From Zancudomyces culisetae HAW-14-8 (lineage: Eukaryota; Fungi; Kickxellomycota): 64,000 nt of DNA. The position numbers were made by a program, and so were the translations under genes. The stretch spans positions 1,116,001 to 1,180,000 of the forward strand of contig JBNJNM010000012.1 in NCBI GenBank assembly GCA_052426225.1, written 5' to 3'. The first letter of the stretch is position 1, and each line of letters opens with the position of its first letter. The notes beneath the pieces were generated by a model. That model saw only the letters and a list, made by a program, of their open reading frames with translations. It did no database searches and was not told where the DNA came from. Positions 53,991 through 64,000 of the stretch are shown here, piece by piece.

Positions 53991-54623
53991 ATGCATGCCA
54001 AAATCCTGACAGCGGGTATACTAAGATCGGCGGGAGGGAGACTTGTAACACAATCCAGAAGTACTGGTGCAGCGATCCGATTGGCGACCAGACCACTATC
54101 GATTCTGAGTAGCAAGCCACGATTCGGATCCCCATGTGGTACATTTTCACTAACAATTCTGGGGATGAAAACCAATCCGCTCAGCACACGCTATCAACAA
54201 CAACAACAACGACAACAACAGCAATATCAAAAAGAGCAGAGGTGCAACATGGCAACATTCAATCAAGTGATCCGGGGATGTCGCAAGCCAAAGCCCAAGA
54301 AGACTCGGTCGCCAGCACTAGATAAGTGTCCACAAAAACGTGGGGTGTGTACAAAAGTATACACAATGAAGCCCAAGAAACCCAATTCAGCCGTACGTAA
54401 GGTTGCGCGTGTACGGTTGAGCAACGGAAAGAACATTATTGCTTACATTCCAGGTGAGGGCCATAACTTGCAAGAGCACAGTGTGGTGTTGGTCCGCGGA
54501 GGGCGAGTACCAGATTTGCCAGGTGTGATGTACCACGTTGTTAGAGGAGCACTGGATTGCCAAGGTGTACAAGGACGTACTGCTAGCAGAAGTAAATACG
54601 GAGCCAAGAAACCAAAGAAATAG
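53991..54623 (+). CDS. MRPS12: Mitochondrial ribosomal protein uS12m
   Basis: Arg/Ser-rich presequence and poly-Q, then MATFNQ...CPQKRGVC...[20 protein letters not shown]...[27 protein letters not shown]. Confidence 0.95.
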
Positions 54624-54923
54624 AGTAGAGAACGGATATTGAATTGATCGTTTTTTTTTCTATTTTCTATTTTCTATTTTGTGTTCTTGTTTTTTGTCAT
54701 TAATCAATAGTACCAATATATATAAATTATTATTATTACTAATATTATTATTTCTACATTTTCTTTTCTATTCTTCTCACTTTTTTTCTCTTCCGTTCTT
54801 TATTTTCATACAAAGTAGTTTAAAGTAAATGACCCCAATACGAAAAGTTGCTAATAAAACAAAAGTAGATAATGTAAACAATGGAAAAGAAAGGGGAAGG
54901 GGAAGGGGACACGTTCATATTAA

Positions 54924-56234
54924 TCAGGACTTGTACAGTATTCCGGCGGCATAACTAACAGAACTATCTTTTACAGACAAGCACTTTGAAGACTGTGAAT
55001 AATCCACAAAATCAACGCGAAATGATGAGTCTTTAGTTGAAGGGAGACTCTTTTTTCGGGTGGAGGTATATGCAACGGCCTCCAAAAGAACCATTATGGG
55101 ATGGCGTCCACAAATGGTGTTCTCAGTTGTATCCAGGTACGATGCAAACTGGGCGGGATCAAGAGATTTGATGGCGGCAATGGCTTCGTAATCGAGATTT
55201 TTGATGCTGGTATGGATTGGTACAGTCTTGAGGTGTTTTTGGTAGTTCACTAGTTCATCCCGCGAAGTAATTCTTGGATCCAAAAAAGTAAAATCGCTGG
55301 ACGGATTTTCGGTTTCAGAGGGTGAGTAGAATGTGTATTGGAACCTCGTACCCCAGTGGCAAAAATCAGATGATATGGCAAATAGTGTCCTGGATGGTTC
55401 GCCGCCACTACTATCTTCATCATTCAGGTATTCAGATAACACTTTACCATAGTAAGCCTCGGCTTCCCGGTCAAGATTTCCAACGATTATTGGAATGACC
55501 TTTAGTTTGTTTTCCAGAAGATAGTTGGACGAGTTTTTTGCAGCAGATTTGGCAGCAGACGAATAAGCTTTGTTTGTAAGAAGACCGTTGGTAGAATCAA
55601 GGGTGGTACCATGCTCGCCCTGGCTCTGGGCACCATCACGAACATTGTTTCCAGAGCTATCGCTTGGATGGTTTGTTTTCAAATGTGTTGTATTTTCCTT
55701 TGCAGCACCAAACACATAGTGCAAAAACGGCATAAGCATCTCTAAACTATGCTCATCTTCTTCCTGTTTCACACGTAGAGTCGAAAAGCGGGCACGGCGT
55801 TTAAGCCGGGCAATTTCGTCAACATCGACGGCCAATTTGCCAAAGGGCGTTTCCAAACTACCGCAACCACTAATTGCGCAATCGTCAAGGTAAACGTGGT
55901 GGCTTGGGCCTAGTAGAATTATTCGGGAGTATTTGGAGATATCGAGTGCCTTGTAGCTGTACGCTGCGGTGCGGCCGCAGTAGGTATATCCAGCATGTGG
56001 GACGATTATAGCGTGAATGTGGCTATCTCCCTTGTCATTTTCCTCTGTTTGAAGTTTATCTTTGGCTTCGTATTGTTGTTCTTGGTCTGGTTGTTCAGTT
56101 AAAATATCGGAAACTTGGTCAGGAACCGAATCGAGCCAGGACTGCAGTTCCTTGCCCAAAACCCGGGGATTCGCTGTGTACCAACTACCGGCATGGGTAG
56201 CCCTTCTTGTTGGTAAAGTGTTTTTTGCTGACAT
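54924..56234 (-). CDS. MHO1: MEMO1/Mho1 family protein
   Basis: Motifs RRATHAGSWY, IVPHAGYTYCG, LGPSHH, EHSLEM, ISSDFCHWG.RF.Y, NTICGRHPI and YSQSS...DSSVSYAAG; several low-complexity insertions. Confidence 0.94.
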   Translation of the reverse strand: MSAKNTLPTRRATHAGSWYTANPRVLGKELQSWLDSVPDQVSDILTEQPDQEQQYEAKDKLQTEENDKGDSHIHAIIVPHAGYTYCGRTAAYSYKALDISKYSRIILLGPSHHVYLDDCAISGCGSLETPFGKLAVDVDEIARLKRRARFSTLRVKQEEDEHSLEMLMPFLHYVFGAAKENTTHLKTNHPSDSSGNNVRDGAQSQGEHGTTLDSTNGLLTNKAYSSAAKSAAKNSSNYLLENKLKVIPIIVGNLDREAEAYYGKVLSEYLNDEDSSGGEPSRTLFAISSDFCHWGTRFQYTFYSPSETENPSSDFTFLDPRITSRDELVNYQKHLKTVPIHTSIKNLDYEAIAAIKSLDPAQFASYLDTTENTICGRHPIMVLLEAVAYTSTRKKSLPSTKDSSFRVDFVDYSQSSKCLSVKDSSVSYAAGILYKS

Positions 56235-56482: not shown

Positions 56483-59400
56483 TTATTCATCCTCAGCACT
56501 ACTCAGCCAATCATAAAACGAACGCAAAGCCAGCAAATGAGAAGGAAGAGAAGAGGTAGATTTTTCAGACTTGGAATTGTACCAGGAAATAAACGAATCT
56601 TCGTCAAAGACATCCGCAAGATAAGAGATTTTCAAAATGTTGTTGATGGAGGAGGACCAAGCAGAAATATCGGGAGAAGTTAGAAGCAGAGTTTCTACAG
56701 CATAAAAGTAGGAATTGGGATCAATAGAGATGACAGACTTTTTGATAAGAGAGATGCGATCTTCAACAAACGAACGAACAAGTTTGCCAGAAGTTGGGAG
56801 GAAAATGCCACAAAACAGGCCAGTTAGTAGAGATTTTTTAGAAAGAGAAGAACGCAGTTCGGTGTGAGAAATAAACTTGATTTCCTCGGCTAGAGGACGG
56901 GAAATAAGGTTTGCAGAGGAAGTGGAGTTGTAAAAATAGAGAGAGTAGGTGTTGGCTAGGTGTAGTTCGGCAAGATGAATTTTGGATTTTGCGGAGGACT
57001 GGTCGGCAGAATGGTCGGCAGATACGGGTGAAGCTCCAGCGGGGGCAGCAAGAGGGTGGGGAATACTCTGGGGGGTACGTAGGCTGGGGTTTCTATCTAT
57101 ATAGACAACTTTTCTAGATTTATCATCGGTAGAGGTATGTTTATCAGAATCAGAGACCAAATACTCAGCAAAGCGTTTAGGCTGATCAAAGAAAGAACGG
57201 GAAGAAGTAGAAGAGGAAGGAAGGGGAGGAGGAGGAGGAGGGGTTGAAACTTGAGAAGGTTTCGATTGAGAAATTTGAGGTTGTTGTTGTTGTTTTTTAG
57301 ATTCAGGAGAGAGAGAATCTTTGGGATGAGGGGTTGGAGTAATGTCAGAAGGAGGAATTGAAGGAGTAGTGGAGAGAATGGGAGAACGAGGAGTAGATTT
57401 AGAATCAGGAGGAGGGTTGTGAGAGGGAGAAGGAGAGGAAGGACGGTGATGATGGTGGTGATGGTGATAATCATTGTGATTGGAATCAGAATCAGGATGA
57501 TTGTTAAAAGAAAGCTGGCGGTCGAAATGATGATCAAGATCAGGAGATGAAGGTTGGTTGAAATGGGATTGGCGAGACGAAGAGTATGAAGAAGAGGAGT
57601 AGGGTCTGGAGGAATTTCTGGAAAAGGAGGAAGGGCGAGTAGTAGGAGAAAGAGCAGCAGCAGGAGCAGCAGCAGGGCGATCGCGGAGTTCGTCAGAGGA
57701 GTGGGCGTAGTTGCAGCGGGAGCCATGTGGACAGCCACCAGGCATATTCAGTTTGGTACACATGACGGTTTTATACAAAGGATTTGGACCAAAGGCACGA
57801 GAGTGGTCAGCAGAATCGCGAGGAGGTCTTGAATCGCGAAGTTTGCGCAGTTCTTCTTCGCCGTGAGCAAAGACACAGCGAGTTGAGTATGGACACTCGC
57901 CAGTTTCCAGAAACTTTTCACACATTTTGGTTTTGTACAACATTGAGGTTGTGATTTGGCTGGCATGAGGAGGGCCACGAGAACTGTCGTCGTATTCGCG
58001 TCGTTGGAAGGGTCTGGATGGCCGGTAGTCTTTGTCGTATCTACGGAATTCGGGAGGAGGATGGTCGCGCTGGGAAGAACGAGAAGATGGATATCTGTTG
58101 TTATTGTAACTGCTGTTGTAACTGTTGTTGTAGCCGCTGTTGTAGTTGTTATTGTAGCTGTTATTGTATCCATAGCTTTGTTGGTCTCTTCTAGCAAAAT
58201 CAGGCCTTACATCAATCACCCTTTCTCCTTCTACCTCTCTTTCTACTCTTTCTCTCTTGTACATTCCTCGTTGTTCCTCTTCTGTGTTCAGTTGTCTCTC
58301 TTCTTCTTCTTCCTCTTCTCCTTCTTTTTGCTGTTGTCGCAACCCTGCCTTTTCCTGCTCTCTTTCCTCAAAGTACGACTGGTCTTCATCTGCCCAGTCC
58401 CCTTCGTATATCTTTTGTCTCCAATCACTTGTACTACTCGCCGTCATTACTGGTGCATTCATTGCCGGTTTTTTCGCTTGCTCTTCGTAAGTTCTTGTTC
58501 CCGGCTGCTCAACCACTGTTCGCTTCTTGTATTCTTCGTTTTTGCGCAAAATCCTATATCTAGGGTCTGCTCCACCATCTCCACCGTCTCCTCCTCTCTC
58601 CTCCCTCCCTCTATCTCTATCTCTATCTCTCTCTCCCCTATCTCTCTCCCCTCTCTCTTCTCCTCCATATCTTCGCTCTCTATACGTCCCTCCTCCTGGC
58701 CCTGAATTGTAGTTGCTGTTATTGTTGTGCATGTTTGAATATCTTCCCTCTCCTCGTGGTCCCCTATTATAATTGCCATAATTATTGTACCCTTGCTGCC
58801 TGACCATCGGTGCCTTGACCCACTCACTGCGTCGTCCCTCTACATATTCCTCTGCAATATTGAGTATATCCTGCATATTTTTGTACATCACTTTTTCTAG
58901 CGCCTTTTCTAGCGTGTACCATCCAAACACTATCCCACCGCAATCTACTACGGCCTTTACCGAATTCGCTATATCTACCACTCGTCCCAGATAAAATATT
59001 GCCCTCTTGACCTCATTATTGCTTAGGTACTGTATTTTGGCTCGAAATTCTGTTTCTACCACTATGCTTTTCGCTGCTATTCCAGTAAGCTCTACTGTTC
59101 CCCTCAAAGCACTCCTATTTTTTTTTTTAATCAAGTTTTCTATAAATCGTTGTACTCCTCGCCGTCCTACCTCCACTGCTCAATTCTATCTTTTTTTTTT
59201 TTAAAAAAAATCAATTTATCTTTCTTTTTCTTTTGTGAGGGGAAGAGAGAAAAGTCTGAGCTGGTGAAAAAAATAAAGAAAATATAACATTAAGGCTACG
59301 AGACAATCACAAACAAAACTCCGAGAATCTGGTGTTGTTAATACTGAAATGTCAAGTTTATTTCAATTGTCCTCCATAACTGGGTCTATCCTTTCCTCTT

Positions 59401-59651
59401 CCCCTCTTTTTATGTAATTTATAGGTTGTATACAGCATACAAAATCAAAATAAAATTGCAAAAGCTTCATTTCAATCCAATAATAATAATAAAATGCATT
59501 ACTTGGCTTCATCTTCGTTTCCAAGTCGTTTTGCTTTGGGTGGAGACCAATGCCGCTGGTTAGAAAATGTATCGTTAAACAACAAGTACTCTACCGGTTT
59601 GTTGTGAGATATTCTAAACACAACCAACCCTGTAGTGTTTGTTGAATCCAT
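56483..59651 (-). CDS. Pseudo-Nudix (NUDT2-like) + tandem CCCH zinc finger + W2 domain protein, 926 aa, 2 exons
   Basis: Exon 1 (59651-59503) and exon 2 (59114-56483) join in frame across a GT-AG intron (2781 nt = 927 codons). NUDT2-like N-terminus, two YKTxxC-x8-C-x5-C-x3-H fingers at about 57943-57682, and W2 AA-boxes at the C-terminus. Confidence 0.88.
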
Positions 59652-62035: not shown

Positions 62036-64000
62036 TTAGGCATCAATATGGTTGTAGTATCTGGGAAACAAGATAACGTCACGAATGCTACGCATTCCAG
62101 TTATAAATTGGATGTACCGGTCAAATCCGATACCATATCCACCATGAGGGGTTGAGGAGAATCTGGCTAGGTCTAGGTACCAGTCCAGCGGTCGGTTAGG
62201 AGTGCTTTTGACTGCATCGTTGGTTGTACCATTTCCACTAGCACTTTCACCATCTAGTGGAGGTGGTAGCTGTGAATATAATTCGTTCAACCGAGTTTCT
62301 AAAACCACGGGATCGTCCTCACGCAAACTACCACCAGCCAGTTCACAAATATTTGGAACCAGCAAATCAAAGCACGAGGCAACCCTCTTAACATTATCAC
62401 TATCATGGCTAGTAGTAGTAGTAGTTGTTGTTGTAGATGGTTCGGAGGTAATAGATGAAGAACCCAATTTCATATAAAAGGGTTTAATTTCGTACGGATA
62501 GTCGTAGACAAAGACCGGACCCTTAAAGTACTCATTTGCCAAAAACGCTTCATGTTCTGTTTGTAGTGAATTTCCCCATTCCAACTTTGAACCTCCATAT
62601 ACAAACTTGGTGCTGCGATTACCTTGGCTAGCATCGCGATCAGCACGCCGTAGAATTTCGAGTGCTTCGGCATAGGAGATTCGGGCAAAAGGTTTATCCA
62701 AATGTTGGAATACATCGTAATCAAAATCAAATTCAGAACCAGAACTAGAACCAGAACTAGAGTCAGAGTCATTTGATAATAAAATATCCTTGTCCTTGTT
62801 CTTGTTTTTTTCATCACCACTTCGACTGGTTTTGATTTTGTTTTTTACTTTATTTTTATTACTGATCCTATCGCTTCTGATTTTACGTAAAAATTCAAGT
62901 TCAGCAGCACAAGTAGTTGCAATTTGCCTAGTAGTTTCAACAATAGCACGTTCTACAACATCCATTAGTTGAGAAATAGAGAATACAAACATTTGTTCAG
63001 CCTCCAACATCCAGAATTCAGCCAGGTGTCGACTGGTGACGCCTGTTTCTGCACGAAAGGCCGGGTTGAGTGTGTACACACGAGAATGGGCATGGGCCGC
63101 TGCTTCGAGATGTAGTTGACCGGAAACTGTTAGACTCGCACGTTTTGGACCAAAGAATTCTAGTTCGTTTGTTGATACTACTGGTTTTTCTAAACTGGAA
63201 GAAGAACGTTCAGGTTCAGGTTCAGGTTCAGGTGGTGATGTAGTAATGGAAAAGACTCCACCGCCTCCTTCACAATCATTTGTGGTTAGTAATGGAGTGT
63301 GTATTCGAATATACCCACTGCGAGCATAATGGGCGTGGAAGGCCTGTTCGGCAGCGCTACGAATATTCATTATAGAAGAATGGGTGGTTAATCGAGGACG
63401 AAGATGGGGAAACTGACGGGTATATTCAGCAGTCATGTATTTCTTTTGAAATGGATATCCCTAAAATTAAAAAAAATTAAAAAAAAAAAGTTACAATAAA
63501 TTATAATATTTTTAAATAGGATTTATAAAAAGACGAGTATTAATATGCTAATTTATTACAGTTGAATAGTTAGTTATTTTACCTCGGAATCAATTGCGTT
63601 TAATACAGATATTTCTTGAGCCATTAGTTCATAATTTTGTCCTTTACTTGGAGACTCTTGCAACTTGCCAGAAATACAAACAGCAACACCAGGGCGTAAA
63701 CTAAAAATTAGATATATATATATAGATATAGATAAATAAAAAGAGAGATAAAGATATATATATATATATGTACATATAAATATAAATATAAATATAAATA
63801 TAAATTTACTTTGGGTTTTCGACGAGAAGAATGGGATTATCAACAACAACTTGAAGACCTTCAAAGAGGGTTCCATCAATGACGTTGATAAAGGCTATAG
63901 CCTTTTGTTTGCGAAGGGATTTGACCCACCCATAAACATGAACAGTTGTGAGGTTTGTTTTAGTATCAATTTGGTTTTCAGGATTGAGAATTTGTCGAAT
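62036..64000 (-). CDS. SLM5: Mitochondrial asparaginyl-tRNA synthetase, 5'-truncated by the window edge
   Basis: Exons 64000-63810, 63700-63583 and 63460-62036; OB-fold motifs GWVKSLRKQK..AFI...DG and YPFQKK, then TPLLT.NDCEGGG, LTVSGQLHLE, FRAE....RHLAEFWMLEAE and PHGGYGIGFDR. Confidence 0.93.

Follow-up and report, generated by a model that had tools for sequence, protein, structure and literature searches.

A fungal NUDIX subfamily A protein of Zancudomyces culisetae with a probably inactive Nudix domain, two CCCH zinc fingers and an eIF5-like W2 domain

Gene Structure and Location

The window analysed here, a stretch of 64,000 nucleotides of the Zancudomyces culisetae HAW-14-8 genome (contig JBNJNM010000012.1), was found to possess a gene of two exons at positions 59651–56483 on the minus strand, with a spliced model of 926 amino acids (Table 1). 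This length results from exon 1 providing 49 codons and two bases, with the third base of the split codon coming from exon 2. The ATG lies at 59651, with a GT donor past 59503 and an AG acceptor ahead of 59114. The donor is the only GT(A/G) ahead of a stop when the reading frame is scanned from nucleotide 100 onward, and the acceptor is the only in-frame one yielding the gap-free spacing of the homologues. Other acceptors were rejected, those at 59255, 59219 and 59189 as each reads into a stop and that at 59066 as it would remove most of the Nudix-box helix.

Table 1. Predicted features of the Z. culisetae gene (window positions).
Feature	Position	Strand	Description
Exon 1 (149 nt)	59503..59651	-	Carries the start codon and the N-terminal third of the NUDT2-like domain; first residue coincides with that of the homologues
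Exon 1 content	59503..59651	-	HWxPPK motif (H34, W35, K39); first half of the Nudix box (E46)
Phase-2 GT-AG intron (388 nt)	59115..59502	-	Inside the Nudix box; conserved position
Exon 2 through TAA stop	56483..59114	-	876 full codons past the split codon
Rest of Nudix domain	58823..59114	-	G55, L59 and G109 at the NUDT2 metal-ligand positions E58, E62 and E110
Low-complexity linker 1	57959..58813	-	N/Y/G-rich, R/G/E/D-rich, acidic and S/N/Y-rich blocks; sequence not conserved
CCCH finger 1	57857..57937	-	C-x8-C-x5-C-x3-H; both base-stacking aromatics present
CCCH finger 2	57698..57775	-	34 residues past finger 1; His in the C-x5 loop where the family has Tyr/Phe
Low-complexity linker 2	57014..57688	-	S/P-rich, with poly-His and poly-Pro runs
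W2/HEAT3 domain, complete	56486..56989	-	Both AA boxes (1 and 2) and the two invariant tryptophans present

When the exons were searched separately, exon 1 matched Ap4A hydrolases only, weakly (E 0.11–0.8) and over chain residues 5–55, and exon 2 matched human NUDT2 starting at residue 55 (E 6e-5); in annotated homologues the exon 2 match starts at residue 51–52. An intron at the same codon and in phase 2 was identified in five relatives, namely Furculomyces, Smittium culicis, Basidiobolus, the chytrid Cladochytrium and the aphelid Amoeboaphelidium. On the basis of the separate exon matches and the shared intron position, the predicted 59503/59114 junction is very likely real and ancient. The original prediction had joined the upstream exon in frame to 59114 and regarded the GTG at which the listed open reading frame starts as spurious. 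The splice signals, the spacing and the shared intron agree with the former, and this GTG, at 59176, lies within the intron and was rejected as a start.

The gene is single-copy in the Z. culisetae genome, and the NCBI Z. culisetae protein OMH83478 matches the C-terminal part of exon 2 with 100% identity. Two NCBI models, OMH83478 (659 aa) and OMH82802 (799 aa), are both named 'ZFP36L1'. The starts of the two models, at residues 76 and 218, fall inside exon 2, so that a Nudix domain is missing from both. The 926-aa model corrects these two truncated gene models.

The gene is flanked by a Memo-like gene (window 53991–56234) and a gene for an S12-family ribosomal protein. The same flanks occur in Furculomyces (locus L002), there head-to-head with the family gene, and in the aphelid a Memo gene (L018:10055-10490) is found some 4.5 kb beyond the annotated fragment of the orthologue, which may reflect deep linkage or chance. 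Upstream on the same strand is a class II (D/K/N) aminoacyl-tRNA synthetase gene (window 62036–63436). Class II aminoacyl-tRNA synthetases can make Ap4A. This gene does not adjoin the family orthologues in the loci examined.

Nudix Domain

With the Pfam NUDIX profile no match was obtained to exon 1 or exon 2 taken alone, and homology was established via the PDB and profiles of the family. With the Nudix part as sole query, a word-index search also gave no match, whereas a full HMMER scan did find matches. A profile made from the Nudix domains of 37 relatives matched human NUDT2, the asymmetrical Ap4A hydrolase, with an E of 1e-28. The fold was predicted on the Furculomyces orthologue (P0017), rather than on the Z. 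culisetae protein, and the best superposition of this AlphaFold model (pLDDT 88.8) was with NUDT2 (TM 0.83), with which the family also shares the HWxPPKG motif.

Residues at the metal-ligand positions were counted with NUDT2 numbering taken from the alignment of the profile with NUDT2. The last Nudix-box glutamate (the E62-equivalent) is Glu in none of the 126 family members, which are related sequences and not independent events; I, L, T, A, V, Q, N, S or M is found instead, whereas standalone NUDT2-like matches retain the glutamate. This residue (E56 in Caenorhabditis elegans) we take to be the most critical one of Ap4A hydrolase. E58 is retained in 85 of 126 members and E110 in 87 of 131, and no member has all three glutamates together. 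As 60 of the 126 keep both E58 and E110, weak residual activity is possible elsewhere in the family. The Z. culisetae protein retains none of the three (Gly, Leu and Gly), and does not show the intact box GX5EX7REUXEEXGU with its metal-ligand glutamates. The E58, E62 and E110 positions are metal ligands in DHNTPase, Ap4A hydrolase and RppH (PMC5526541), and the E58A substitution alone abolishes the RNA 5'-phosphatase activity of NUDT2 on ppp-RNA (PMC8616924). Even divergent GDP-sugar hydrolases still retain the last Nudix-box Glu (PMC5389931). From these substitutions, the Z. culisetae Nudix domain is very probably catalytically inactive, and the original prediction of a pseudo-hydrolase derived from NUDT2 is well supported by the profile match, the orthologue superposition and the three missing glutamates.

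The nucleotide pocket is preserved. In NUDT2 numbering, K42 is found in 122 of 123 members, Y82 in 128 of 128, K89 in 129 of 129, F/Y128 in 131 of 132 and H37 in 105 of 122; identity is thus 99–100% at K42, Y82, K89 and F/Y128, compared with a median column identity of 0.64 for the family Nudix alignment. K42, Y82, K89 and F128 have roles in phosphate binding or base stacking (PMC4734340). Pocket residues kept in the Z. culisetae protein are F73, Y79, K86, W115 and Y127. The pocket is also flanked by two further basic positions, ahead of the HW motif, which are K/R in 88–98% of members. The adenine-contacting E130 of NUDT2 is replaced by S, T or N in the family and the ligand therefore may not be adenine-based. 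The loss of the glutamates alongside a near-invariant pocket is the pattern expected of a ligand-binding pseudoenzyme, and binding of some ligand by this pocket is likely.

CCCH Zinc Fingers and Low-Complexity Linkers

Two PF00642 zf-CCCH fingers were detected in exon 2 by Pfam (E 1.6e-12), as had been predicted. The description of these fingers as TTP-type is not supported. The C-x8-C-x5-C-x3-H pattern, the YKT lead-in and the stacking aromatics, the last conserved across the family, are those of TTP/ZFP36, Cth2 and Zfs1. However, TTP proteins are defined by an 18-residue finger spacing and (R/K)YKTEL lead-ins (PMC12710939), whereas the linker has 34 aa in Z. culisetae (26–119, median 41, in 128 relatives), the family lead-in consensus is LYKTRL, with Arg/Lys in place of the lead-in Glu, and the family proteins carry extra domains. 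The fingers can be expected with good confidence to bind RNA; AU-rich specificity is putative, and binding is probably not with strict TTP geometry. No conserved eIF4E-, GYF- or PAM2-binding motif was found in the low-complexity linkers.

W2 Domain

The C-terminal domain scores above the Pfam PF02020 cut-off when cut out (32.8 bits compared with 30), and an AlphaFold model of the last 168 residues gave a full W2 fold (pLDDT 94.8). Together with both AA boxes, this agrees with the prediction of a true W2 domain. The closest structural matches of the model were nearly tied between eIF2B-epsilon (1PAQ, Z 13.8) and eIF5 (Z 12.5); Foldseek again placed these two at the top, but with an E of about 0.01. 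By sequence, the domain is closest to the eIF5 C-terminal domain (E 2e-18 compared with 2e-12 for eIF2B-epsilon), and HHalign against the eIF5 of the Z. culisetae genome itself gave 98.8%. Both W2 tryptophans are present in 123 of 123 members, and the AA-box residues are kept in the family and in Z. culisetae. The fold, both AA boxes and both tryptophans are shared with the eIF5 C-terminal domain and with 5MP/BZW. No GAP, MA3, pyrophosphorylase-like or MIF4G domain was found in the Pfam scan of exon 2 and no eIF4A site was detected; the GAP domain is likewise absent from 5MP. Unlike eIF5, 5MP and BZW, the family has no MA3 domain, brings its own RNA-binding fingers and has family-specific first two W2 helices, and it is not among the five W2 protein classes of a 2022 review (PMC9177959).

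A K-E-x-T-x-x-E motif in W2 helix 2 has its Glu in 118 of 126 members, with Phe at this position in Z. culisetae. The Glu would fall on E569 of yeast eIF2B-epsilon, a residue whose role has been described (PMC3877758), if the match of 20-154 with 558-706 is gap-free there. A profile of the N-terminal helices gave no eIF2B-epsilon match and hence no support for deriving the first W2 helices from eIF2B-epsilon. A second family motif, K-x-W-M-x-V-V-E-L-S, is found 30–40 residues ahead of W2 in about half of the members and is degenerate in Harpellales (window about 57090–57120 in Z. culisetae); equivalence of its W-M-x-V-V-E part to the eIF5 DWEAR linker was rejected, as no match was found.

AA boxes dock the lysine boxes of eIF2-beta in eIF5, eIF2B-epsilon and DAP5, and MNK in eIF4G (PMC9177959). 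Since AA boxes are present in the eIF4G W2 too, which docks MNK and not eIF2-beta, the fold alone does not fix the W2 partner. Binding of eIF2-beta by the W2 domain described here is nevertheless judged moderately probable.

Distribution and Earlier Description of the Family

Searches identified more than 100 proteins with all three domains. Members occur in Harpellales, Kickxellales, Dimargaritales, Basidiobolus, Mucorales, Umbelopsis, Mortierellales, Glomeromycotina, Olpidium, chytrids and Piromyces. In the aphelid Amoeboaphelidium occidentale the orthologue (L018:5001-6400) is annotated as a 151-aa partial protein, and the frame runs on through two CCCH fingers and a W2 domain. As judged from these predicted proteins, the range of the family is from aphelids through chytrids, Olpidium and Zoopagomycota to Mucoromycota. 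No Dikarya member was present among the 120 matches listed, and one matching cluster of 79 was found in the ESM Atlas. A chance fusion or mis-assembly was rejected in view of these relatives and of an older Z. culisetae assembly, to which the region is 99.2% identical. All three predicted domains having been found by profile or structure, with the Nudix fold on the Furculomyces orthologue, the Nudix-2xCCCH-W2 architecture is almost certainly real.

The original prediction knew of no described protein with this three-part architecture. This claim of novelty fails because the architecture was catalogued in 2025 as NUDIX subfamily A, comprising 84 NUDT2-related proteins with Nudix, two PF00642 and PF02020 domains (Pasterny et al., 2025; PMC12210691). 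Subfamily A occurs in early-diverging fungi and, from docking, was considered probably an Ap4A hydrolase with a preserved box. On sequence grounds the Z. culisetae gene is a member of this subfamily. The best matches of exon 2 are OMJ24274, PVU97352 and OLY80654 (E 4e-27 to 5e-21), which share one column in the accessible part of the protein list of that study; the Z. culisetae gene is not among the entries of that part. The subfamily A residues W38, P41, Y82, K89 and the Phe ten residues past the box are present in Z. culisetae, with Ala at G43, which is Gly in 119 of 123 relatives. No functional study of, or experiment on, any family member was found in the literature. The architecture of the family is accordingly already known; new here are the case against the published assignment as an enzyme, the eIF5-like nature of the W2 domain, the aphelid member and the ancient intron.

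Three further observations concern related sequences. A second fungal Nudix group, subfamily B, is fused to an eIF2B-subunit (IF-2B) domain, a further case in which Nudix domains are tied to eIF2 control (PMC12210691). A Coemansia model (P0004) has a quinone-oxidoreductase-like gene joined on ahead of the family protein, which is probably an annotation fusion. A sequence from Logan SRR26194948 (L019) has an intronless Nudix part with an insertion ahead of the box, then one finger and then a stop.

Related Genes in the Genome

The Z. culisetae genome was found to possess separate eIF5, BZW-like, eIF2B-epsilon-like (L017), TTP-like and Ap4A-phosphorylase-like genes; the TTP-like gene, on contig C9, has the 18-residue finger spacing. 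As eIF5, BZW-like and eIF2B-epsilon-like genes are all present, the W2 domain of the family protein may be regarded as an additional copy that is free to act in an mRNA-specific way. Searches of the genome gave no standalone NUDT2. Equal-scoring pairs of matches were seen in the assembly for Dcp2-like (L006/L007) and BZW-like (L014/L015) sequences and for one CCCH gene (L027/L028), which represent haplotype duplicates or segmental duplications.

Proposed Function

The loss of the catalytic residues makes regulation of the translation of chosen mRNAs more likely than action as an enzyme. Our best reading, which is put forward tentatively, is an mRNA-tethered eIF5 mimic in which the ligand of the dead Nudix pocket is a polyphosphate nucleotide or an RNA 5' end. 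The CCCH fingers would bind single-stranded elements in a subset of mRNAs, and the eIF5-like W2 domain would dock the eIF2-beta lysine boxes. Without the eIF5 GAP domain, the W2 would be a 5MP/BZW-type eIF5 mimic held on selected mRNAs, where it would most likely damp or re-tune initiation; 5MP, which has a W2 but no GAP domain, is an eIF5 mimic and competitor and a translation repressor (PMC3201852). The Nudix domain would not hydrolyze its ligand, whether Ap4A, an ATP-like nucleotide or an RNA 5' end, and when occupied may serve as an anchor or switch. A functional analogy is CFIm25 (NUDT21), an inactive Nudix protein which binds Ap4A and RNA (PMC7705103), although it is of a different Nudix lineage, acts in nuclear 3'-end processing and has no CCCH or W2 domain. 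Everything beyond the domain anatomy is inferred, and repression and activation cannot be told apart from sequence; the predicted mRNA-specific regulator engaging eIF2 is in this respect plausible, with ligand sensing and eIF2 binding as its conjectural parts.

Four other explanations were weighed against this reading. The protein may be an adaptor of mRNA decay or storage, similar to TTP or granule proteins, in which the fingers select messages, factors of decay or of granules are brought in by the disordered linkers, the W2 engages a basic peptide of a partner other than eIF2 and the dead Nudix domain holds the 5' end. The conserved finger aromatics, the long low-complexity linkers, the MNK docking of the eIF4G W2 (PMC9177959) and the fact that RNA 5' ends are NUDT2 substrates (PMC8616924) are consistent with this; however, the W2 is far nearer to eIF5 than to eIF4G by sequence, the linkers are without conserved GYF-, PAM2- or 4E-type motifs and the genome has its own 18-spaced TTP-like gene, so that such an adaptor is considered unlikely. 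A single-chain initiation factor resembling DAP5 would use the Nudix domain to bind a cap or non-canonical 5' end and the fingers to bind the message, with the W2 recruiting the eIF2 ternary complex and promoting translation, for example during stress or spore germination. Although the DAP5 W2 does bind eIF2-beta (PMC9177959) and the retained pocket is of the NUDT2 type, NUDT2 itself acting in vitro on caps and ppp-RNA, an activator of this kind appears rather unlikely, given that neither a MIF4G domain nor an eIF4A site was detected and that isolated eIF5-like W2 mimics are repressors (PMC3201852).

The published suggestion of an active Ap4A hydrolase keeping Ap4A low (PMC12210691) is favoured by the NUDT2 fold and pocket, by the docking result and by the failure to find a standalone NUDT2 in the genome. 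It conflicts with the loss of metal ligands (all three in Z. culisetae and, in 126 of 126 members, the last box Glu, a residue that even divergent GDP-sugar hydrolases hold; PMC5389931), docking probes binding and not catalysis, and an Ap4A-phosphorylase-like gene is present; this activity is therefore improbable. Least probable is an mRNA-localised mini exchange factor for eIF2, with the W2 acting as the catalytic domain of eIF2B-epsilon. It would account for 1PAQ being the top structural match, near-tied with eIF5, and for the helix-2 Glu, which falls on E569 only if the match is gap-free there, but Z. culisetae has Phe at this position, the N-terminal-helix profile and the closer sequence similarity to eIF5 point elsewhere, and a separate eIF2B-epsilon-like gene exists.

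Significance

Compared with NUDT2, the family always lacks E62, often lacks E58 and E110 and is fused to RNA-binding and W2 domains. Should the mRNA-tethered eIF5 mimic indeed be a ligand-binding pseudoenzyme joined to an eIF5-like W2, it would offer a direct test for a dedicated reader of Ap4A or unusual caps in eukaryotic translation, a long-open question, and members are found in tractable fungi (Mucor, Rhizopus, Mortierella and Spizellomyces) and in mycorrhizal fungi. A bolder and doubtful proposal is that these proteins form a sixth class of W2 translation regulator and the first to combine mRNA selection with a nucleotide sensor in one chain. Engagement of eIF2 on CCCH-selected mRNAs would then be gated by the ligand of the dead NUDT2 pocket, either Ap4A or a 5' end that is capped or Np4-capped. 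If true, the family would represent a dedicated receptor for Ap4A or a non-canonical cap in translation, one retained from the common ancestor of aphelids and fungi, with an apparent loss in Dikarya.
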